Below, piece after piece: positions 493-48,059 of a DNA stretch of 64,000 bases (position 1 is its first letter; every line of letters begins with the position of its first letter). The notes under the pieces are model-generated. The model had not been told where the DNA came from. It saw only the letters and a program-made list of their open reading frames with translations, and did no database searches. The DNA comes from Macrostomum lignano (Eukaryota), in NCBI GenBank assembly GCA_002269645.1, contig NIVC01001046.1:62001-126000 (forward strand). Reading direction: 5' to 3'. A program made the position numbers and the translations under genes.

Positions 493-657
493 CTCAGCGG
501 CAGCTGCCCTTTTGCCAACCGGTGCCAATTCGCCCACGGCCCCGAGGAGCTGCGAGGCCGGCCCGACCGGCACTGGCTGTACAAAACGGAGCCCTGCCGC
601 GCTTTCCATGGCGAAGGACTCTGCCGGTACGGCGGCCGCTGTCATTTTCTACACTGA
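493..657 (+). CDS. Terminal exon of TIS11/ZFP36-type tandem CCCH zinc-finger protein (paralogue A); 5' exons lie upstream of the window
   Basis: After acceptor ccgcag: LSGSCPFANRCQFAHGPEELRGRPDRHWLYKTEPCRAFHGEGLCRYGGRCHFLH*. End of ZF1, YKTEP lead-in, complete C-x8-C-x5-C-x3-H ZF2. Same phase-0 intron position as paralogue B. Frame absent from the ORF track. Confidence 0.9.
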   Translation, partial: LSGSCPFANRCQFAHGPEELRGRPDRHWLYKTEPCRAFHGEGLCRYGGRCHFLH

Positions 658-1084
658 TTGACTTATGTGCATAGTTGTATGTATGTTTGTATTTATGTGT
701 ATATACGTCCATATGCTTAAAAATACAGACTTTACAGACTTATTTAAAAAATAATCCAACATATACTCAATTCCCGTTAAATTCTATTTAACTGACTTAT
801 TTTCTTGAAAATCAAATTTTCATACTGCGGTGAAGCTGATAAACTAAGAAGAGAATGCAACAAGGGAGGAAATAGGAGAGGAAATGGCGGGAGGCAACTT
901 AGCGTCGGTTCGATATTCGGTGCCGCTCAGCTTAAGCTATTCGCCTCACTTATTGTACTCATGTTTCTCTGTACTCGTGCTTTGAAATCTGTGACAATGA
1001 ATTCATAGATGGGTGGACCTTTTTTCTAAACCTTTCTGCAAAGTCTCCGTCTCATTCTCCGCTCCTCTCCGATCCCTTCGCCCG

Positions 1085-1725
1085 CTCTGCCCCTCTCCGC
1101 CCCTCTCCGCCCCTCTCCGCCCCTCTCCGTTCCTCTCCGCTCCTCTCCGCTCCTCTCCGCCCCTCTCAGCCACTCTCCGCCCCTCTCAGCCACTCTCCGC
1201 CCCTCCCAGCCACTTTCCGCCCTCTCCGCCCCTCTCCGCCACTCTCCGCTCCTCTCCGCCCCTCTCCGCCACTCTCCACCCTCTCCGCCCCTCTCAGCCA
1301 CTCTCCGCCCCTCTCAGCCACTCTCCGCCCCTCTCAGCCACTTTCCGCCCTCTCCGCTCCTCTCCGCCCCTCTCCGCCACTCTCCGCTCCTCTCCGCCAC
1401 TCTCCACCCCTCTCCGCCCCTCTCCGCTCCTCTCCGCCCCTCTCCGCCACTCTCCACCCCTCCGCCCCTCTCAGCCACTCTCCGCCCCTCTCAGCCACTC
1501 TCCGCCCCTCTCAGCCACTTTCCGCCCTCTCCGCCCCTCTCCGCCACTCTCCGCTCCTCTCCGCCACTCTCCACCCCTCTCCGCCCCTCTCCGCTCCTCT
1601 CGGTCCCTCTCCGCCACTCTCCAACCCTCTCCGCCCTCTCAGCCACTCTCAGCCACTCTCCGCCCCTCTCCGCCACTCTCCGCTCCTCTCCGCCCCTCTC
1701 CGCCCCTCCCCGTCCTCTCTGCTCC
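1085..1725. repeat. 10-bp satellite (CTCTCCGCCC)n
   Basis: Direct inspection; reverse complement of the 3880-4610 array. Confidence 0.95.
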
Positions 1726-1764
1726 TCTCCAGAAAAAATCAGAAGGGTGGGGACGGGAGAGGAG

Positions 1765-2035
1765 AGCAGGAGAGAGTGACAGGGTGAGAGAGAGTGACAG
1801 GGGGAAAGAGAGTGACAGGCCGGGAGAGAGTGACAGGCCGGGAGAGAGTGACAGGCCGGGAGAGAGTGACAGGGGCCGGGAGAGAGTGACAGGCCGGGAG
1901 AGAGTGACAGGCCGGGAGAGAGTGACAGAGGCCGGGAGAGAGTGACAGGGGCCGGGAGAGAGTGACAGGCCAGGAGAGAGTGACAGGCTGGGAGAGAGTG
2001 ACAGGGCGGAAGAGAGTGACAGGCCGGGAGAGAGG
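1765..2035. repeat. 18-bp minisatellite GGGAGAGAGTGACAGGCC
   Basis: Direct inspection. Confidence 0.9.
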
Positions 2036-2888
2036 AAAATCGCGGAGGTGCGATCAGGAAATGTAAGGTTTTTTTTGGAAGCAGTTCTTGAGGTGCTTTG
2101 TGAAGCTGCTGTGTTAAACGACTTATAGTCCTCGGTCGGGGTCAGTCAGTCAGTCAGTCAGGCTGGGCCTCAAACCAGGCTTCACAGCAGGGTTTCTCAG
2201 TTTTTTATTGTCTGTTTAACAGCAATTATTTATGCTTCCTTGACCTTATTCGCTGAGGAGCGAAGATTTGCGCTCACCTACGATATGAGCTGGAGACCAT
2301 ACGTACCCTCGTATATCGTTTGAGTCCAACTCGGTTGCTTGCCAAGCGGTGACCGCGGTGACCCAGCTGTGAGCTGCAGTCAGCAAAGCCGACCAGCCGA
2401 AGCGGTGAAGTCCGATCTGCAGCAGCTTGAGACACCTGGGATGCTCAGGTTGGCTCAGCTCTCCAAGTGTTCGTAACAGCCCAGTTCGAGTTGTGCTGAT
2501 TCGCCATGGCAACTAGCGGGAATGCAGAGCTCGGGGCCGAGACCAGGTGGGCCCGGCAGCGGAATGAAAGCAACTGGCTGCCCCCTCAATTTCACTTTGA
2601 GTCCGTCTGCCATCAAAAACTGGAACTTTGGAATTCGAACTCAGGACGATCAATATTCTCATCAACTAGAGTTCTAAAGGAACCACATCACAAGCGTGTT
2701 CGACAAAGTGATGGATTGCAACTAATTTCATAACTTGTTAATTGATTATATATTATACTCGTAATTTTCTAATTAGTGTTTATTTAATAAAATTTTAAAG
2801 CAAAGATTACGAGTAGTTACAGAACACAAAACTAGGCATTCCATATTTTATGTGGTTAGTTTGTATTACAATTGAGAGTGCAGGGCTG

Positions 2889-3512
2889 TCACTGTCCTGT
2901 CAGTTTCCTGCGGCCGCAGCCGTGGCCGGTGCCCAGCGGGCAGTATTTCACGGTGTGGGCGCTGCCGCCGGTGGCGCCGCACAGCGGGCAGGTGAAGCGG
3001 CTGAGCACCGGGCAGGCGACGCTGCCGTTGCCGTCCTTCAGGGTGTGGCCGCTGCTGAAGGCCTCCGGCTCGCCGTTCTTGCGGCAGAAGACGCAGAAGA
3101 CGGGGCGGCGCGGCCGGCTGGCGTTCCTGGCGAGCACCGCGCGCTGCAGGGCGGCGTTGGGCAGCGGGGCGGCAGCGGGCTGGAACTGGAGCTGGAGCTG
3201 CTGCTGGGTCTCGAGCTGGAGCTGCTGCTGGGTCTTGAGCTGGTGCTGCTGCTGGGTCTCGAGCTGGAGCTGCTGCTGGGTCTCGAGCTTGAGCTGCTGC
3301 TGGGTCTCGAGCTGGAGCTGCTGCTGGGTCTCGAGCTTGAGCTGCTGCTGGGTCTCGAGCTGGAGCTGCTGCTGGGTCTCGAGCTGGAGCTGCTGCTGGG
3401 TTTCGAGCTGGAGCTGCTGCTGGGTCTCGAGCTGGAGCTGCTGCTGGGTGTCAGTCTGCTGCCGCAGGTACTGCAGGTACCGATTCTGCAGCTGCAGATT
3501 TTTAGAATACAT
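2889..3512 (-). CDS. nanos: Nanos (two CCHC zinc fingers); true start uncertain, ZF exon probably starts at acceptor 3491
   Basis: FCVFCRKNGEPEAFSSGHTLKDGNGSVACPVLSRFTCPLCGATGGSAHTVKYCP is the canonical Nanos domain. AATAAA on the minus strand at 2779-2784. Confidence 0.93.
   Translation of the reverse strand: MYSKNLQLQNRYLQYLRQQTDTQQQLQLETQQQLQLETQQQLQLETQQQLQLETQQQLKLETQQQLQLETQQQLKLETQQQLQLETQQQHQLKTQQQLQLETQQQLQLQFQPAAAPLPNAALQRAVLARNASRPRRPVFCVFCRKNGEPEAFSSGHTLKDGNGSVACPVLSRFTCPLCGATGGSAHTVKYCPLGTGHGCGRRKLTGQ
3186..3449 (-). repeat. Coding 24-bp repeat x11 in nanos (TQQQLQLE)
   Basis: Unit GAGCTGGAGCTGCTGCTGGGTCTC on the plus strand; keeps the frame. Confidence 0.95.
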
Positions 3513-3561
3513 TTATAAAATTCCATCTTGAAATGTTTCGATGCCGAGAACTCAGCTTTAC

Positions 3562-3818
3562 ACAGGTGGACTCGACTGGGCATCTCAGACCGACGCGTCT
3601 CCAGGCCGTCTCCCAACTCCCATGGCCCCAGCAACCAAACGAGACTCGGATTGGGAAGGGGGGTGACGGAGCTGAGAGGCCGCAGGCTGGCTGCAGCTGG
3701 AGACGGCTCTCCGTTGCCAAGCGGTTTCCAAGCGGGAATTTGCGGTTGCCTCTCGGCCAGCCCAGGTGGCTGCGGCTGCTGGAGCGACTCGAGCGATCTG
3801 GGAGTTGCCATGCCGGCC
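3562..3818 (-). other. Probable upstream nanos exon (reading frame unresolved)
   Basis: Polypyrimidine tract plus ctcctcag acceptor before 3818, ATG at 3811, gtaaag donor after 3562. Part of it is conserved in the copy at 9032-9185. Confidence 0.45.
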
Positions 3819-3879
3819 TGAGGAGCGAAAGGGAGATTGAGAGAGAGGAGAGGAGATTGGAGTTGTTGAAAGCGCGGTG

Positions 3880-4610
3880 AGGGGCGGAGAGGGGCGGAGA
3901 GAGGCGGAGAGGGCCGGAGAGGAGCGGAGAGGGGCGGAGAGGGGCGGAGAGGGGCGGAGAGAGGCGGAGAAAGGCGGAGAGGGGCGGAGAGCGGCGGAGA
4001 GAGGCGGAGAGGGCCGGAGAGGGGCGGAGAGGGGCGGAGAGCGGCGGAGAGAGGCGGAGAGGGCCGGAGAGGGGCGGAGAGGGCCGGAGAGGGGCGGAGA
4101 GGGGCGGAGAGGGGCGGAGAGGGGCGGAGAGGGGCGGAGAGGGGCGGAGAGGGGCAGAGAGGGGCAGAGAGGGGCGGTGAGGGGCGGAGAGCGGCGTAGA
4201 GAGGCGGAGAGGGCCGGAGAGGGCCGGAGAGGGGCGGAGAGCGGCGGAGAGAGGCGGAGAGGGCCGGAGAGGGGCGGAGAGGGGCGGAGAGGGGCGGAGA
4301 GAGGCGGAGAGGGCCGGAGAGGGGCGGAGAGGGGCGGAGAGGGGCGGAGAGGGCCGGAGAGAGGCGGAGAGGGCAGGAGAGGGGCGGAGAGCGGCGGAGT
4401 GAGGCGGAGAGGAGCGGAGAGAGGCGGAGATGGCCGGAGAGGGGCGGAGAGGGCCGGAGAGGGGCGGAGAGAGGCGGAGAGGGCCGGAGAGGGGCGGAGA
4501 GGGGCGGAGAGGGGCGGAGAGGGCCGGAGAGGGCGGAGAGCGGCGGAGAGAGGCGGAGAGGGCCGGAGAGGGGCGGAGAGCGGCGAAGAGGGGCGGAGAG
4601 GAGCGGCGAG
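3880..4610. repeat. 10-bp satellite (GGGCGGAGAG)n
   Basis: Direct inspection. Confidence 0.95.
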
Positions 4611-5349
4611 GTAGAGGTTGAGGTAGAAAGGCGAGGGAAAGCGAGAGGGCGAGGGAGAGGAGATGAAGAGGTAGAGTCAGAAGGGATTTTCAGTTTCTTG
4701 ACATTTTGAAGTGAGCTGGCTGCTCTCCAAAGCAGCCGGAGTCTGTGGGGATCTGCGGTGGGGAGTCCTGGCTGGGGTTGCAGTGGGGAGGATCAGTGCG
4801 AGTTCCCCGCACGAAATGCTGGCCGCCCACGCTTTGCCTGCTGCTTCCCTGCACGGCGTCTCAAAGTCTTGTGGGGATTTCCGAGCCGCCCTTTTTTCCC
4901 GGACTCGAATTCGGAAACTGGGGTGGATTGAGGAGTGTCAGAGGGGCGGATTGAGGAGTGTCAGAGGGGCGGATTGGGGAGTGTCAGAGGGGCGGATTGA
5001 AGAGCGTCAGAGGGGCGGGTTGAGGACTGTCAGAGTGACACGAAGTGTGTCAGAGTGAATTCCCCAAATCCATTTTAGGAAATAGTTTCATAGCTTCGTT
5101 TTCATTTGATTCATGGTGTCATCGTGTCATTTCCTTAATTTTGCTTTCTGCTGCCTTTTCGCAATGCTTTGCCTTTCCTTATGAGAGGGGGTCATCAGAC
5201 CGGGATGTCTTTTCTCCAGAAAGTTAAGCATTGATTTTCACTCAGCCACCAGTTTCTATACAAGATTTATTCACCCCAAAGCTTGCTCGATCCCCATTCG
5301 CTAAGGTGAGGGAGGGGTTCAAGGGGCCCGGAGGTTCTCCTTGCTTCTC

Positions 5350-5393
5350 CCATTGGCTCAGGAGGCGCCCCCTCCCCTCAAAGGCGATAAAAG
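5350..5393 (+). promoter_or_regulatory. Putative core promoter of TIS11 paralogue B (reverse CCAAT box, GATAAAAG TATA-like)
   Basis: ATTGG at 5352-5356 and GATAAAAG at 5386-5393, about 95-135 nt upstream of ATG 5485. Confidence 0.4.
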
Positions 5394-5484
5394 CGGCCTG
5401 AGGATCTGTGCGGCTTGAAACTGAAAATCATCCGAACTCACTACTCAACTTTTCACCACAGCTTAGCAATTTTGATAGCCAGCC

Positions 5485-7784
5485 ATGAGCAGCTGCAGTT
5501 CCAGTTCCGGATTGACCGCCTATGGAGAGCTGCGACTGAGCGAAGGTACGCAAATTTCTGCTGCACCTGGCTTCTTGATTGACAGCTCATTGAATTTATT
5601 GCACATTCAGCACACATTCAGCACACATTCAGCACACATTCAGCACACATTCAGTACGCATTCAGCACACATTCAGTACACATTCAGCACACATTCAGCA
5701 CACATTCAGAACACATTCAGCACACATTCAGCACACATTCAGCACACATTCAGCACACATTCAGAACACATTCAGAACACATTCAGCACACATTCAGCAC
5801 ACATTCAGAACACATTCAGCACACATTCAGTACACATTCAGTACACATTCAGCACACATTCAGCACACATTCAGCACACATTCAGCACACATTCAGAACA
5901 CATTCAGAACACATTTAGCACACATTCAGCACACATTCAGTACGCATTCAGCACACATTCAGCACACATTCAGCACACATTCAGCACACATTCAGTACGC
6001 ATTCAGCACACATTCAGTACACATTCAGCACACATTCAGCACACATTCAGAACACATTCAGCACACATTCAGCACACATTCAGCACACATTCAGCACACA
6101 TTCAGCACACATTCAGAACACATTCAGCACACATTCAGCACACATTCAGAACACCTTCAGCACACATTCAGCACGCATTCAGCACACATTCAGCACACAT
6201 TCAGCACACATTCAGCACACATTCAGCACACATTCAGCATACATTCAGAATGCATTCAGATTCAGAACATATCTACACACTCAGAACACATCTACAGACA
6301 TTCAGAACACATTCAGTACGCATTCAGCACACATTCAGTACACATTCAGTACACATTCAGTACGCATTCAGCACGCATTCAGCACACATTCAGCACACAT
6401 TCAGCACACATTCAGAACACATCAAGTCTGTAGTCACAACACATGTTTACAACATACCCAACACATTAGAACTCAGCCAATAATCCCAAACAATCATCAT
6501 CCAAATTTCATATTTCAGAGCAAGCCAGTGTCATCACGGACGAAGACACTTTCTGCCTCATCGACCGGCTGGTCAGCGACCTGCTGCTGGAGGAACAGGA
6601 GGGCTCAAGGAGAAGAGACTTGGACACTGAGAAGTACAAAACAGAGCTCTGCCTGAACTACTCTGTGAGTGCGAAGTAGACTGTGCATCTTGGCTTATAG
6701 AAATGCATTGGTAAAGCATAGGGTTTAATGGTCATAGGGTCTGAGATCCACAGATTGATGTGTCATAAGGATTCGTAGTCATGGACTAATGGTCATGGAG
6801 GCTGATGGTCACAGGATTGTCATAAAAATTCGTGGTCGTATGGTGTGATGGACATAGATATTGATCGTCATAGTGGCTTCTGGTTATTGAGATTTATGGT
6901 CATAGAAGTGGCTGCTCATCAAGGTTGATGCTCGTTGCTCGAGGTTGATGGATTGATGGTCATATGGATGGGTTGCAATACAGTGATGGTCATATAGATG
7001 GGTTGCAATACAGTGATGGTCATATAGATGGGTTGCAATACAGTGATGGTCATATAGATGGGTTGCAATACAGTGATGGTCATATAGATGGGTTGCAATA
7101 CAGTGATGGTCATATAGATGGGTTGCAATACAGTGATGGTCATATAGATGGGTTGCAATACAGTGATGGTCATATAGATGGGTTGCAATACAGTGATGGT
7201 ATAGCCAGGTATAGGTCATAGATATTAGGTCATGGGCATCATAGGCCAGGTATAGATCATAGATTTTAGGTCATGGGCATTAAAGCCAGGTATAGGTCAT
7301 AGATATAAGGTCATGGGCATCATAGACCAGGTATAGGTCATAGATATTAGGTCATGGGCATCATATTCCAGGTATAGGTCATAGATATTAGGTCATGGAC
7401 ATCATAGGCCAGGTATAGGTCATGGACATCATAGGCCAGGTATAGGTCATGATATTATAGGCCATGTGCATCATAGGCCAGGTATAGGTCATAGATATTA
7501 GGTCATGGGCATCATAGGCCAGGTATAGGTCATAGATATTAGGTCATGGGCATCATAGGCCAGGCATAGGTCATAGATAGCCTCAGCCCGGTCATACTCA
7601 TGGCCCACCGAAATCGCCATCGCAGGAGAGCGGCAGCTGTCCTTACGGTCCGAAGTGCCGGTTCGCCCACGGCAAATCCGAGCTGAGGTCGGTGGTTCGA
7701 CACCCACTGTACCGCACCGTGCCTTGCCTGGCCTTCAGCTCGGGGCACTGCAGGTTCGGCCGCCGATGCGCCTTTCTGCACTGA
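5485..7784 (+). CDS. TIS11/ZFP36-type tandem CCCH zinc-finger protein (paralogue B), 3 exons, 121 aa
   Basis: Exons 5485-5545, 6519-6664, 7626-7784 with compatible phases (1, 0). Contains [26 protein letters not shown], an 18-aa linker ending YRTVP, then [19 protein letters not shown]. Confidence 0.9.
5600..6420. repeat. 11-bp satellite (CAGCACACATT)n, TIS11-B intron 1
   Basis: Direct inspection. Confidence 0.95.
6950..7575. repeat. 30-bp array (6950-7200) then about 41-bp array (7200-7575), TIS11-B intron 2
   Basis: GATGGTCATATAGATGGGTTGCAATACAGT; GGTCATGGGCATCATAGGCCAGGTATAGGTCATAGATATTA. Confidence 0.93.
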
Positions 7785-8049
7785 ACATGGAAGACACCCG
7801 AAGAGACAGCGGCACCCCAGGACACCCAAGACAGCGGCACCCCAGGACACCCAAGACAGCGGCACCCCAGGACACCCCAAAAGAAGGCCTTTAAAAAATT
7901 ATGATTTGAGTTGAAAAGTTACTATTACTGTTGCCTTATTGTTACATACTACGCGAATCGAACTAAGGACGTCGGATGCGCTCATTTTTGTTTACAAAAA
8001 ATGTACCAAGTACTTGTAATCCTCAATTGCATCGCTCACCTTTACTCCA

Positions 8050-8385
8050 CTGACCCTCCTTGACCCTACTGACCCTCCTTGACCCTACTGACCCTCCTTG
8101 ACTCCACTGACTCCCCTTGACCCTAATGACTCCCCTTGACCCCACTGACTCCCTTTGACCCCACTGAATCCAATGACTCCCCTTGACCCCACTGACTCCC
8201 TTTGACCCCATTGAATCCCCTTGACTCCACTGACTCCCCTTGACCCCACTGAATCCCCTTGACCCCACTGATCGCTTGACCCCACTGACTCCCTTTGACC
8301 CCACTGAATCCCCTTGACTCCACTGACTCCCTTTGACCCCACTGAATCCAATGACTCCCCTTGACCCACTGATCCCTTGACCCCT
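8050..8385. repeat. About 20-bp degenerate minisatellite CCCTTGACCCCACTGACTCC
   Basis: Direct inspection. Confidence 0.88.
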
Positions 8386-8929
8386 TTGCTTTTGCCTCTC
8401 TTCTGAATTGATTTCCCATCGGCGCATCGCTTAAAATATTTCGATTGCACATTTAACACTAAACTGTTTCCGAATCGCTTCTTACATCTTCGATTTTGCA
8501 TGAGTTACACAGTTCTGTAGTTGTCTGTCTGTAATTTTCAAAGCAAATAACCGCAACTTTCTTGCTAAGCTGCATGACTTCAAAAGTATAACAAACTGTA
8601 ATTTTTGTCCACTTGTAATTACATTCAGTTAATATAAGTAGGATAAAATAAACTCAATATGCTGCTTTGTACAGACCCTTAGTAAATATTTTCTATGCAA
8701 TTATCTTTGCTAAATTTTGTTGAATTCATTAAAAAGATGCAGCGCTTGTTTTAAGACTGAAATTAACGCTAAATAAAGCTTGGGATATTACAGAGAGGGA
8801 TGGGCCTCAGTGGCTGAGGGTCCGCAAGGACAGACCAAGAGTTATTCGGGTCCTTGCTCCTTGCGTGAGGTTCAAGGACGCCTGCACTGCCGGCTGTGCT
8901 ATTTTTAGAACCAGTCGAGTTGAGACTCC

Positions 8930-9185
8930 ACAGGTGGGTCTGCGGCGGTTGCTAAGGGCAGCTCTGGGATTTTCGAACCGGTTTGAAGGCTCGACTTCCA
9001 GGTGGACTTAAAGGTTGAGGGTAGCGGGGTTGAGAGGCCGCAGGCTGGCTGCAGCTGGAGACGGCTCTCCGTTGCCAAGCGGTTTCCAAGCGGGAATTCG
9101 CGGTCGCCTCTCGGCCAGCCCAGGTGGCTGCGGCTGCTGGAGCGACTCGAGCGATCTGAGAGTTGCCATGCCGGCCTGAGGAGCT
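8930..9185 (-). pseudogene. Degenerate duplicate of the nanos 5' region, zinc-finger exon absent
   Basis: About 9032-9185 is nearly identical to about 3673-3825 (gagaggccgcagg...gccatgccggcctgaggagc). Further short matches (agtccacctg, ttctaaaaat) but no CCHC sequence downstream. Confidence 0.65.
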
Positions 9186-9252
9186 GTGAGATTTGAATTG
9201 GGTGAGGGCAGCTGAGGGAGAGAAGTGAAAGTTCGAGGTTTTGTGTTGCATG

Positions 9253-9580
9253 GGGAGGGAGAGGGAGAGGGAGAGGGAGAGGGAGAGGGAGAAGGAGAGG
9301 AAGAGGAAGAGGGAGAGGGAGAAGGAGAGAGAGGGAGAGGGAGAGGGAGAGGGTGAGGGTGAAGAGAGGGAGAGGGAGAGGGAGAGGGAGAGGGAGAGGG
9401 AGAGGGAGAGGGAGAGGGAGAGGGAGAGGGAGAGGGAGAGGGTGAGGGAGAGGGAGAGGGAGAGGGAGAGGGAGAGGGAGAGGGAGAGGGAGAGGGTGAG
9501 GGAGAAGGAGAGGGAGAGGGAGAGGGAGAGGGAGAGGAAGAGGGAGAAGGAGAGGAAGAGGAAGAGGGAGAGGGAGAGAG
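9253..9580. repeat. (GAGGGA)n hexamer
   Basis: Direct inspection. Confidence 0.95.
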
Positions 9581-9957
9581 GAGCCAGAATAGGCTTTTCG
9601 GTTTCTTTACATTTTTAAGTGAAGATCGCCGGCGTTGTTAACACCAGGTGGGACTCCATGATCTGAGCCCGGGACTCCTAAAAATAGCTCAGGTGCAAAA
9701 TAGCATGGCGCTAGCTCTAGAAGTCCTTGTCTGAGCTTTACTATTTCATTTGAAGGTGAGTGAGAGGGAAGTCAGAGTGTTAGAATTCAGAAGCGGAGCC
9801 AAAATCTCATTCCCATTGTCCCTCTCCATGGGTGGTCCTGTCCAATTCCTTGCCTTGCTTCAACTTGCTTCGCGACACCCGAAGATCTGACAGTGAAATG
9901 ATTTATTTTCCTCTGCATTTCTCAGGTTCTCGCATCAGCTGTAAGGTCAATATGAGA

Positions 9958-11590
9958 GCGGCGGATTGGCAGAGGGGGCGGATTGGCAGAGGGGCGGATT
10001 GGCAGAGGGGCGGATTGGCAGAGGGGCGGATTGGCAGAGGGGGCGGATTGGATGAAGGGGCGGATTGGCAGAGGGGCGGATTGGCAGAGGGGCGGACTGG
10101 CCGAGGGGGCGTATTGGCAGGGGGCGGATTGGCAGAGGGCGGATTGGCAGAGGGGCGGATTGGCAGAGGGGCGGATTGGCAGAGGGGGCGGATTGGATGA
10201 AGGGGCGGATTGGCAGAGGGGCGGATTGGCAGAGGGGGCAGACTGGCCGAGGGGGCGTATTGGCAGAGGGGCGGATTGGCAGAGGGGCAGATTGGCATTA
10301 GCAGGGGATGGATTGGCAGAGGGGCAGATTGGCATTAGCAGGGGGTGGATTGGTAGAGGGGGCGGATTGGATGAAGGGGCTGATAGTGATTGGTAGAGGG
10401 GTGGATTGGCAGAGGGGCGGATTGGCAGAGGGGGCGGATTGGATGAAGGGGCTGATAGTGATTGGTAGAGGGGCGGATTGGCAGAGGGGCGGATTGGCAG
10501 AGGGGCGGATTGGCAGAGGGGCGGATTGGCAGAGGGGTGGATTGGCAGAGGGGCGGATTGGCAGAGGGGCGGATTGGATGAAGGGCTGATAGTGATTGGT
10601 AGAGGGGCGGATTGGCAGAGGGGCGGATTGGCAGAGGGGGCGGATTGGCAGAGGGGCGGATTGGCAGAGGGGGCGGATTGGATGAAGGGGCTGATAGTGA
10701 TTGGTAGAGGGGTGGATTGGCAGAGGGGCGGATTGGATGAAGGGGCTGATAGTGATTGGTAGAGGGGTGGATTGGCAGAGGGGCGGATTGGCAGAGGGGG
10801 CGGATTGGATGAAGGGGCTGATAGTGATTGGTAGAGGGGCGGATTGGCAGAGGGGCGGATTGGCAGAGGGGCGGATTGGCAGAGGGGGCGGATTGGCAGA
10901 GGGGGCGGATTGGCAGAGGGGGCGGATTGGCAGAGGGGGCGGATTGGATGAAGGGGCTGATAGTGATTGGTAGAGGGGGCGGATTGGATGAAGGGGCTGA
11001 TAGTGATTGGTAGAGGGGCGGATTGGCAGAGGGGCGGATTTTCAGAGGGGGCGGATTGGCAGAGGGGGCGGATTGGCAGAGGGGGCGGATTGGCAGAGGG
11101 GGCGGATTGGATGAAGGGGCTGATAGTGATTGGTAGAGGGGGCGGATTGGATGAAGGGGCTGATAGTGATTGGTAGAGGGGCGGATTGGCAGAGGGGCGG
11201 ATTGGCAGAGGGGGCGGATTGGATGAAGGGGCTGATAGTGATTGGTAGAGGGGCGGATTGGCAGAGGGGCGGATTGGCAGAGGGGGCGGATTGGCAGAGG
11301 GGCGGATTGGCAGAGGGGGCGGATTGGCAGAGGGGCGGATTGGCAGAGGGGGCGGATTGGATGAAGGGGCTGATAGTGATTGGTAGAGGGGGCGGATTGG
11401 ATGAAGGGGCTGATAGTGATTGGTAGAGGGGCGGATTGGCAGAGGGGCGGATTGGCAGAGGGGGCGGATTGGATGAAGGGGCTGATAGTGATTGGTAGAG
11501 GGGCGGATTGGCAGAGGGGCGGATTGGCAGAGGGGGCGGATTGGCAGAGGGGGCGGATTGGCAGAGGGGGCGGATTGGCAGAGGCGCGGA
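9958..11590. repeat. G-rich satellite (GGCGGATTGGCAGAGG)n with higher-order insert GATGAAGGGGCTGATAGTGATTGGTA
   Basis: Direct inspection. Confidence 0.95.
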
Positions 11591-12164
11591 TTTTCAAAAT
11601 GCCAATTTGTGTGACAAGCTGCTCTGCATGTCTGAAACCTGCTGTAACTGAGACTGAACTGGTAGACAAGTTGCTAAAATGAGGAAAAGAAAGCTAAGAG
11701 TCCACACACGCAGCTCGTGCGGGATGGGAGCTGCTGTTTGTCAAAGCGGCTGCCCACCTGTGATTTATGGCCCCGCAACTCGCTACTGAGCGCTTTGAGT
11801 TTTGCCGCAGCGCTGCCGCCATTGGCTGAGGCCTCGAGAGCTGCGGTGGGGAATCTCGGGGAGGATCTGAGTTCACTCCACGAACCGGTTGCGTCCCTGC
11901 GCGGCGTCTGTAAGTCTGGCGGGCCTTCCCGAGCTGTCACATTAAAAATATCCCTATGCATGTTTGCTATAAATTGTTTTAAACTGCAAATCGCCGCAGA
12001 AATTGCTTAAAATCCAAAACCGGTGTGAAGAGAGGAACTGTGTCGATAAAAATGGAGCTGATTTTAGTAACAGTCGAAAAAGATTTCACAGGTGGGTCAG
12101 CGTTTGTTGCTAAGTGTAGCACTGGGGTTTTGAGGACCAAAGCAAGAGGGAAGCAGAGAGAGGT

Positions 12165-16654: not shown

Positions 16655-36221
<19,567 letters not shown>

Positions 36222-39788: not shown

Positions 39789-41537
39789 TCGTGCCCCGTC
39801 GTTTTTTATTTTCAGCTTGGGATAGCTGTTTATTTGCCCAATAGAGTTAGAGTCTGATAATATATTATTGCAGTAACTTATCAATTAATTGCAGGAAACA
39901 CAAAATATTTGAGTACTGGCTCATAATGCGGAAACACTAGCAGTTGAGAAGACAGTTGAGATCGACTGCAGAGAAGTTCTGGCGCATACTTAATTGATAA
40001 ACAACGATTATCGCTCGTATTTATATTTGTTTCATGGGAAGAATATTACTCGTACGTACTGGTCGACCGCTCCATTGACACTAGCGCATGTAGTTTGCAT
40101 GAGTATATCGCGAGCATGGTCATTGGGCCTGTGCAGTTGAATCATGAATAATGAAAGCAAGTGAGCTTTATTCCTTTATGCACTCTATGCACAAGGAGAT
40201 ATGCACCACATCCACACGGAAAAAACACGATTAGATAGCTATATGTATATTGCGTATAGTTTAATCTGGATTGCTAGTTCCTTGCATGCCTAGTACGTTA
40301 ACATGTTGCTTCTTTCTAATTAAAACAGATGATTGAAACAACAGAATTACAGAGTAATTACAGAATTAACAGTAATCAGATGCAACCAGGTTAGCAATGA
40401 ACCCTTTATCTGCCAGAAGAACCCGAGGACTTTGCTTTGTAATTCAGTGCGTTTGCTGATTGCTTATTATGGACAAATCAAGCTCATCTTCTATTTTTCG
40501 ACTGTGCTTAAGTGACTAATCGTTATGAAATGTAGTCGAAGTCAAGTTTATTACAATAACTTGACGCCAATTATAAAAATATACAGTTTTTGACAAGTAT
40601 TTCTTTTCTAATTCTACATTTCTAGCCACTAACATTTTTCCGAAGACAATAATGGTAATGCAAACACGAGTTTTGACTCAACATTCATTTCAGAGAGTTC
40701 GAAGACTAAATTTAAACCAGGTAAAAAACTTTAGGAAATATATTTATTCATATTTTAGCAAGATTTTAAACTAATGAATGAATTATATATTTAATAAATT
40801 ATTATGTTAAATGCAAGCGTGTTATCATTATTATTTTTTCGTTCCGTGTTTGCTTCGTTATAAACGACAAAGCACGCTAAGCGATAATCGCGAAAACTCA
40901 AATTTAAACATAAAAATGACGTACAAAGATGATATGAATAACTGTGATAATAATTACTTTTACTGTGACTTTGACTCAGTTTTTTATCTTTCCGATCAGC
41001 CTTCTTGGCTTTCATTCTGATTTTATAATATGGCATTGATTCGAAAGTACGAGCTAAATGCATTTGAATCTAATCCTCTTAGAATTTCAATCAAGTAAAA
41101 GCTAATGACAACAGTTCATAATCATGAAAAGCCTTGTGCTTCTTAGAACGGATTTATTTAGGCTCTCGTACTATTCTACCAAGTAGAAAGCAATGTTTGG
41201 TATATAAAAAGGCATATATAGACTATAGTTCAAACCTATGATTTGAAAATATATCATGTTAATTTTCAATGACATGTAGGCTTTTGTTTTCACTTTCATT
41301 TTCAGATTCATAATTTGGTAGAAATGGCAATTGCTCTGAAATTATATTTTATATATGAAGATTGAAATTTTCTAAATTGACCAACTTTTTTTACAAATTT
41401 CAGTTTTTCAAATTTCAATGACTATTATAGAATAAAATTCTACTAAGCATTTCTGACGTATACTAAATTTTAAAAGGCGACAACAGTTAGAATTTCAAAT
41501 TCAATAAATCCGGAAAAATTCCAGCCTCTGCAAAGAA

Positions 41538-47928
<6,391 letters not shown>

Positions 47929-48059
47929 GTTGAGCACTTTTTATTGTTCGTTGAGCAAATTATTTGCAGCTTTGAGTGTCGGTAGCACAATACCTATATA
48001 GCCTGTAGAACAATATAGCTCTTGCGTTTTTAGCTCTAAGCAGAGCAGAGCTCTGTGGA

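Follow-up and report, generated by a model that had tools for sequence, protein, structure and literature searches.

We analysed a 64,000-nucleotide stretch of the Macrostomum lignano genome (contig NIVC01001046.1, positions 62,001 to 126,000, forward strand; hereafter the window), in which a nanos gene lies between two genes of the TIS11-like CCCH zinc-finger type, TIS11-A and TIS11-B. Both Nanos and TTP-type proteins are directed to 3' untranslated regions (3'UTRs) and regulate mRNAs of the germline and of stem cells, cell types for which M. lignano serves as a transgenic flatworm model. The window is animal DNA with about 50% G+C. Near its left end we found, in order, the last exon of TIS11-A on the plus strand, nanos on the minus strand, TIS11-B in three exons on the plus strand, and a 154-bp block (block B) that repeats almost exactly a block upstream of nanos (block A). 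nanos is tail-to-tail with TIS11-A and head-to-head with TIS11-B, with which it shares a 2-kb spacer. This three-gene neighbourhood is genuine. The order, strands and gene identities given in an initial annotation of the sequence were all recovered by reading of the open reading frames (ORFs), Pfam searches and matches to solved structures (Table 1). The same annotation knew of no described physical linkage between nanos and TIS11 genes, and our literature searches, which were not exhaustive, also found no nanos-TTP linkage in published work. As set out below, block B appears to be part of a longer and older duplicate of the nanos 5' flank.

The nanos gene and its TIS11-like neighbours

The nanos gene encodes 207 residues and ends in two CCHC fingers. 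It matched the Pfam domain zf-nanos (PF05741) over profile positions 1-53 of 54 (E = 2.3e-23; 82.6 bits, cut-off 27), and the solved Nanos structures 3ALR (3.4e-19) and 5KL1 and 5KL8 (about 3e-18). The finger spacing was exact, C-x2-C-x12-H-x10-C and C-x2-C-x7-H-x4-C, the residues read from the ORF being CVFC-RKNGEPEAFSSG-H-TLKDGNGSVA-C ... CPLC-GATGGSA-H-TVKY-C. By each sequence criterion tested, nanos reads as an ordinary family member. Like the Nanos proteins of Drosophila, zebrafish, planarians and schistosomes, it has a C-terminal zf-nanos domain with exact CCHC spacing; unlike them, its N-terminal half is encoded by a minisatellite as (QQQLQLET)n. Paralogous M. lignano models lack this array or have it in another frame, and its copy number is probably variable. 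No vertebrate-type NOT1-interacting motif was seen in this nanos; PMC5207322 describes the motif as missing from many invertebrate Nanos proteins.

Beyond the nanos stop codon, a GC-rich unique segment (2246-2700) is possibly a long nanos 3'UTR. Peptides of 2279-2500 on the minus strand were found again in deposited models of M. lignano, twice in P0131 and also in P0134, and the same strand has poly(A)-signal hexamers near 2779 and 2204. Exact-product look-ups of six ORFs gave no match (the 207-residue nanos product, an overlapping 257-residue product, products of 99 and 53 residues from block B, 3533-3880 on the plus strand and 2506-2733 on the plus strand). In a word-indexed protein search, the full-length nanos query was swamped by its Q-rich repeat, while TIS11-B as query returned 10 candidates. 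There was no nanos entry in the supplements of PMC5173321. Published lists place homologs of NANOS1, ZFP36 and ZFP36L1 among age-upregulated genes, and ZFP36L homologs appear in Gene Ontology tables; these entries are not tied to the present loci.

TIS11-A is represented by its last coding exon, its earlier exons lying to the left of the window. The exon opens at the acceptor cag/CTC at 493 (slashes mark splice boundaries), is translated as LSGSCPFANRCQFAHG...CRYGGRCHFLH-stop (in full, LSGSCPFANRCQFAHGPEELRGRPDRHWLYKTEPCRAFHGEGLCRYGGRCHFLH-stop) and ends ...CHFLH-TGA with the stop codon at 655-657; it matched Pfam zf-CCCH with E = 4e-12. TIS11-B is complete, with GT..AG introns and a spliced product of 121 residues. 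Two stretches of it matched zf-CCCH (E = 1.1e-15), and residues 59-121 matched the whole tandem zinc-finger (TZF) domain of TIS11d (1RGO, 9e-21) and of TTP (1M9O, 4.5e-20). The spacing C-x8-C-x5-C-x3-H was exact in finger 1 of TIS11-B and finger 2 of TIS11-A, of which finger 1 is half within the window; finger 2 of TIS11-B is C-x7-C-x5-C-x3-H. In TIS11-B, KYKTELC leads into finger 1 and a degenerate PLYRTVPC into finger 2, with a linker of 18 residues; in TIS11-A, WLYKTEPC precedes finger 2 and the linker has 19 residues. We thus found the (R/K)YKTEL lead-in and 18-residue linker by which the TTP/TIS11/ZFP36 family is recognised.

The initial annotation had also stated that the two CCCH genes share an intron position and stop directly after the last histidine. 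Both statements hold: each gene has a phase-0 intron before xSGSC within finger 1, and each ORF ends at its last zinc-binding histidine (...FLH-stop), with no C-terminal CNOT1-binding motif in either. TIS11-A and TIS11-B resemble the TTP/TIS11/ZFP36 family in their two CCCH fingers, KYKTELC-type lead-in and 18- to 19-residue linker. They differ from it in the tiny size of TIS11-B, the missing CNOT1-binding tail, and the C-x7-C spacing and degenerate lead-in of TIS11-B finger 2. By analogy they may be minimal TTP-like RNA binders that recognise AU-rich RNA as TTP does. Because the CNOT1-binding tail is missing, a repressor role for them is only assumed. The description of the locus as a cluster of mRNA repressors was fair for the domains present, but for the CCCH proteins the repressor part is read from the domain.

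Upstream of TIS11-B, an inverted CCAAT box and a TATA-like element about 95-135 bp before the ATG are likely to be its core promoter. Over the comparable exon, 31 of 52 residues (60%) and 62% of nucleotides are identical between TIS11-A and TIS11-B; only 7 of 14 fourfold sites match, so that their synonymous sites are saturated. No DNA similarity was found between the introns or UTRs of the two genes. Judged by this divergence they are old paralogs, much older than the similarity of the 154-bp core.

Table 1. Features of the nanos/TIS11 neighbourhood, in window positions.
Feature	Position	Strand	Remarks
TIS11-A last coding exon	493-657	+	second half of CCCH finger 1, finger 2, stop
GC-rich unique segment 3' of nanos stop	2246-2700	-	kept at 96-100% in paralogous M. 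lignano loci
nanos	2889-3512	-	single-exon uninterrupted ORF, 207 residues, two CCHC fingers C-terminal
24-bp minisatellite within nanos ORF	3189-3449	-	TRF period 24, 10.9 copies, 95% matches; in frame, (QQQLQLET)n
Block A	3673-3826	-	154-bp core, 161-314 bp upstream of nanos ATG
(GCGGAGAGGG)n microsatellite	3874-4611		TRF, 73.9 copies; between block A and 31-bp motif
31-bp motif, copy A	4684-4714	-	27/31 identical to copy B (87%)
Upstream island 1, copy A	4750-4767	-	18 bp, 89% identity to copy B
Upstream island 2, copy A	4785-4815	-	31 bp, 74% identity to copy B
Upstream island 3, copy A	4842-4886	-	45 bp, 80% identity to copy B, E = 3e-6 (best)
Putative TIS11-B core promoter	5350-5393	+	inverted CCAAT CCATTGG 5350-5356; TATA-like GATAAAAG 5386-5393
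TIS11-B exon 1	5485-5545	+	ATG ... GAAG, donor gtacgc
TIS11-B exon 2	6519-6664	+	acceptor cag, donor gtgagt
TIS11-B exon 3	7626-7784	+	acceptor cag, end ...CAFLH-TGA
Block B	9031-9184	-	second copy of 154-bp core; 1.25 kb past TIS11-B stop; nanos orientation; no adjoining nanos coding sequence
(GAGGGA)n microsatellite	9255-9583		TRF; between block B and motif B; positional counterpart of 3874-4611
31-bp motif, copy B	9592-9622	-
16-bp minisatellite (AGAGGGGCGGATTGGC)n	9955-11592		TRF; 1.6 kb, stretches module B
Upstream island 1, copy B	11838-11855	-
Upstream island 2, copy B	11858-11884	-
Upstream island 3, copy B	11890-11934	-

The duplicated flank upstream of nanos

Blocks A and B were identical at 151 of 154 positions (98.05%), with no indels (blastn E = 1e-77) and mismatches at 3741, 3747 and 3801. 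The block occurred only in these two copies within the window, where none would be expected by chance. Thus the near-identical stretch of about 150 bp in the initial annotation was real and measures 154 bp, but it lies outside the nanos ORF, upstream of the ATG. Its edges are sharp: identity fell to 15-35%, the random level, within 20 bp on both sides.

Self-comparison of the unmasked window found nothing common to the two halves of the supposed cassette beyond the block and low-complexity purine runs. In a sensitive blastn search of the sequence masked for tandem repeats, homology extended further, on the upstream side of nanos only (minus strand), and it was collinear and in the same orientation in the two copies. 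It consisted of a 31-bp motif, whose 28-bp core (4687-4714) has only these two occurrences in the window (0 expected), and three short islands beyond it. The spacer between block and motif is a purine-rich microsatellite in both copies, with differing repeat units. A short array related to the (AGAGGGGCGGATTGGC)n minisatellite of module B lies near module A (4921-5030). The duplicated unit is therefore the nanos 5' flank, at least 1.2 kb long in copy A (3673-4886) and at least 2.9 kb in copy B (9031-11934). The side facing the nanos body gave a different result. A global alignment of the next 170-200 bp scored below shuffled controls, no nanos relic (zinc fingers, N-terminus or 3' flank) was found beside block B in 7785-9030 (tblastn E<=50 and masked blastn), and no DNA similarity was found between 658-3672 and 7785-9030. 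The comparison of the two halves, proposed with the initial annotation, thus yielded homology beyond the 150-bp block in the motif and islands, but none on the nanos-body side.

The first origin suggested for this arrangement was one recent tandem duplication of the whole cassette of convergent TIS11 and nanos genes, after which the body of the second nanos would have been lost. Such an event agrees with the sequence and direction of the elements (TIS11-A, nanos with flank A, TIS11-B, flank B), and with the intron position and the end at the last histidine that the CCCH genes have in common. It does not agree with the degrees of divergence: nucleotide identity is 62% in the TIS11 exons, where synonymous sites are saturated, 74-89% in the flank islands and 98% in the core, an unevenness that a single recent duplication of the cassette could not produce. 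The lack of DNA similarity in the TIS11 introns and UTRs and across the nanos-body side also stands against it, and the supposed loss of zinc fingers from a second nanos left no relic beside block B. We consider this origin quite unlikely.

The other origin suggested was a separate and more recent copying of the 5' piece. In its simplest form, a process such as ectopic repair or template switching would have copied about 154 bp alone to a place beyond TIS11-B, downstream of it, with which the piece had no earlier relation. The very sharp edges on both sides and the 2% divergence of the core are what such an event would leave. However, collinear islands continue across 1.2 kb of copy A and across 2.9 kb of copy B, with a positionally matching purine-rich microsatellite upstream of both blocks and a unique 31-bp motif (27/31) that is not expected by chance. 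Given these collinear islands, recent copying of 154 bp alone is insufficient, and we judge it improbable.

We favour, with slightly better than even confidence, an older duplicate of the nanos 5' flank in which a non-coding core of 154 bp has been kept near-identical by gene conversion. The flank would have been duplicated at some earlier time, either alone or as part of an old tandem duplication that included TIS11 and after which the body of the second nanos was lost. The copies would then have diverged to 74-89% in the stretches that can still be aligned, broken up by microsatellite turnover, while the core was kept at or reset to 98% by conversion between them. The core resembles gene-conversion patches in diverged segmental duplicates, which show the same short, sharp-edged tract of near-identity, low-identity flanks and mosaic variants.

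Two further observations concern the surroundings of the modules. Minisatellites built on a GGGGCGGATTGG core, which contains a GC box and an inverted CCAAT box, occur at 4921-5030, 9955-11592 and 47325-47778, and two of these three arrays adjoin the duplicated nanos upstream modules. On the plus strand at 11968-12095, a TATAAA box is followed by ATGGAGCTGATT... (MELILVTVEKDFT), ending at a CAG/GTGGGT donor. This may be the first exon of a plus-strand gene lying head-to-head with module B, mirroring the position of TIS11-B relative to module A; no Pfam matches were found in the ORFs downstream of it.

Paralogous nanos loci in deposited models

A HMMER scan with the nanos domain retrieved four deposited M. 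lignano models from UniProt/UniParc (P0131, P0134, P0135 and P0136). Mapped on the window, they reproduced its translations at 96-100%, including in non-coding frames, which confirms the DNA as that of M. lignano, in line with the flatworm origin implied by the initial annotation. The models contain antisense TIS11 exons and block peptides, and those deposited at the nanos loci are chimeras that mix reading frames and even strands; they are not trustworthy as proteins. They remain informative about the arrangement of the DNA. P0134 follows the minus strand through block B, antisense TIS11-B exon 3, block A, the nanos fingers, the 2279-2437 segment and antisense TIS11-A, and the same arrangement therefore appears to be present in an independent, older assembly. 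P0134 also implies an extra inverted nanos with a third block variant to the left of the window, or a palindromic mis-assembly, and P0135 contains two nanos zinc-finger regions and two block-like pieces. In P0131 and P0136 the 11838-11934 region is joined to the block. By this mapping, the nanos/TIS11 neighbourhood exists in further homeologous copies, represented by P0131, P0135 and P0136. Such copies are expected, as M. lignano is a hidden polyploid (PMC5730564).

The paralogs also supply the mosaic variants. In P0136 the nanos-proximal block carries two copy-B variants beside a copy-A-type flank, and at these two T/C sites the third block, found in P0134, combines A and B variants.

A second copy could arise as an assembly artefact, through a mis-join or an uncollapsed haplotype. 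M. lignano assemblies are redundant and hard to build (PMC5730564), and the inverted extra nanos that P0134 suggests in the older ML2 assembly would suit such an error. The two blocks, however, differ at three sites, their flanks on the nanos-body side are entirely different, and P0134, from an older independent assembly, has block B, antisense TIS11-B, block A and nanos in the same order. An artefact is thus extremely unlikely.

The block could also derive from a dispersed repeat or mobile element, a piece of which came to lie twice near nanos by chance. More than half of the M. lignano genome is repetitive (PMC5730564), and the block edges are sharp. Against this, the 64 kb contain just two copies, which agree in orientation and in context, and the block has no terminal repeats and no coding capacity typical of an element. 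Every deposited M. lignano model found with block peptides also has a nanos zinc finger, although these models were found by a nanos query. The block was absent from about 70 kb of other M. lignano loci. We rate a dispersed repeat as very unlikely.

Those other loci bear on the age of the window. A UDP-glucose pyrophosphorylase (UGP) gene and a nuclear-receptor gene (41500-47950 on the plus strand and 50790-58450 on the minus strand) have the order and orientation seen in three near-identical M. lignano loci (L005-L007). The window UGP has its best relative by far in M. lignano, at 68% identity, against at most 56% for any other animal. As these genes are only ~68-77% identical to L005-L007, the window is a paralogous region of older origin within this genome. 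L005-L007 had neither nanos nor a TZF gene nor the block within 10 kb. An unrelated metagenomic nanos homolog (L001-L004) had no CCCH neighbour within 2-3 kb, which is a weak negative.

Nature of the core and its possible functions

The core could in principle be a structured RNA, an exon or a regulatory sequence. It had no Rfam match at the gathering threshold or at E<=1, and no match as a tRNA or spliced leader (SL) RNA gene; the SL sequence does not occur in the window. Its folding was no better than that of shuffled sequences (z-scores +0.47 and +0.99). On the minus strand, the 5' edge of the block reads GCTCCTCAG/GCCGGCATGG in both copies, with the look of a 3' splice site followed by an ATG in a strong context. 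The ORF that starts at this ATG (3811) is out of the nanos frame, and each of the three A/B differences would change its product. No GT[AG]AG donor, the dominant donor motif in M. lignano (PMC8629364), was found on the minus strand from 5440 to 3480, and there was no splice donor at the 3' edge of either block. Splicing cannot connect this ORF with the nanos frame: every usable acceptor is in phase 0, and a GT[AG]AG donor is lacking. We therefore rejected a coding N-terminus of nanos in the block, starting at ATG 3811. All in-frame acceptors are in phase 0, and the only phase-0 GTs of that ORF are weak ones in codons for Val. A single donor of fair quality, GTGTAAAG at 3563, would remove the nanos ATG when spliced to CTGCAG/, and the resulting frame has no start.

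The region next to the nanos start suggests another way of processing. Acceptors of the type YTNCAG give exon starts at 3491, 3485 and 3470, all in the nanos frame and just inside the start of the ORF, and three out-of-frame ATGs (3811, 3583 and 3526) precede the nanos ATG. In M. lignano, 30-39% of genes are trans-spliced, the 35-nt leader ends in ATG and the trans-acceptor motif YTNCAG is enriched (PMC8629364, PMC5730564). nanos may therefore be SL trans-spliced at YTNCAG, in which case the SL would supply the start codon and remove the three upstream ATGs. Because the SL ends in ATG, trans-splicing at 3491, 3485 or 3470 would discard block A as outron. nanos resembles SL trans-spliced M. lignano genes in having YTNCAG acceptors in frame near its ORF start, though the in-frame acceptors partly follow from its CAG-rich coding sequence. 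The core is thus most likely a non-coding promoter-proximal or outron sequence and not a nanos exon, and block B would be an orphan copy of a piece of the nanos regulatory region.

Several points weigh against a converted, non-coding core. The three sites at which A and B differ lie multiples of three apart, and the only frame in which the changes are synonymous is the minus-strand one shared with nanos; simulation gave P = 0.04 for this frame (0.16 for any frame), a hint of coding constraint. In copy A this frame lacks a start, and four stops separate its stretch in the block from nanos. An exon would also account for the 5' edge of the block, with its resemblance to a 3' splice site (CTCCTCAG/G). 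Gene conversion, moreover, is deduced here from the identity pattern and the mosaic variants alone; strong purifying selection on a regulatory element would give a similar picture.

Block B and its upstream module might themselves be functional, either as a distal alternative nanos promoter or 5' leader, with TIS11-B nested antisense in an intron, or as a nanos-type promoter that drives an antisense RNA into the 3' region of TIS11-B. Block B has the nanos orientation and lies upstream of nanos, and the core and several islands have been kept while the rest decayed. The paralog models join the 11.8-kb region to the block, and the poly(A) signals of TIS11-B (8647-8772) are only 260-380 bp away from it. 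On the other side, neither block has a donor at its 3' edge, there is no canonical GT[AG]AG donor nearby and no ORF of note downstream, and the deposited models that support the joining mix frames and are unreliable. A functional block B is, in our judgement, unlikely.

Taken a step further, the copy-B module (9031-11934) might act as an active nanos-type promoter or leader. It would then either give rise to a distal isoform of nanos, whose first intron would contain TIS11-B in antisense orientation, or produce a transcript that runs antisense into TIS11-B. Nanos and TTP-like repressors would be coupled in cis in germline or stem cells, and gene conversion would keep their control elements matched. 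We regard this as rather a long shot. Coordinated action of the nanos and TIS11-like genes is at present only a candidate idea. If it were true, the neighbourhood would be a compact case of possible cis-coupled control, offering a shared 2-kb head-to-head spacer and a conserved duplicate of the nanos control region in a transgenic model.

More likely, the locus simply reflects local duplication in a genome that is very rich in repeats. We consider it a real but fairly ordinary result of local duplication and gene conversion. Even so, it provides a corrected nanos gene model and two unannotated mini-TZF genes, and it reveals the deposited M. lignano models at the locus as frame-mixing chimeras.

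The window as a whole is saturated with tandem repeats. We counted 49 arrays with a TRF score of at least 200, covering 33.2 kb or ~52% of the window, far above the 15% of simple and tandem repeats reported for the M. lignano genome as a whole. Almost every intron and intergenic spacer has its own distinct mini- or microsatellite array. Within a 14-bp minisatellite array, a segment of ~340 bp (29560-29897) is shared with an M. lignano nuclear-receptor locus (L007 22221-22505) at 76% overall, with a nearly identical core of ~200 bp, and is probably a repeat fragment. The right end of the window (63031-63400, plus strand) carries a reverse-transcriptase fragment of a retroelement without long terminal repeats (non-LTR), with the motif YADDLALLS....

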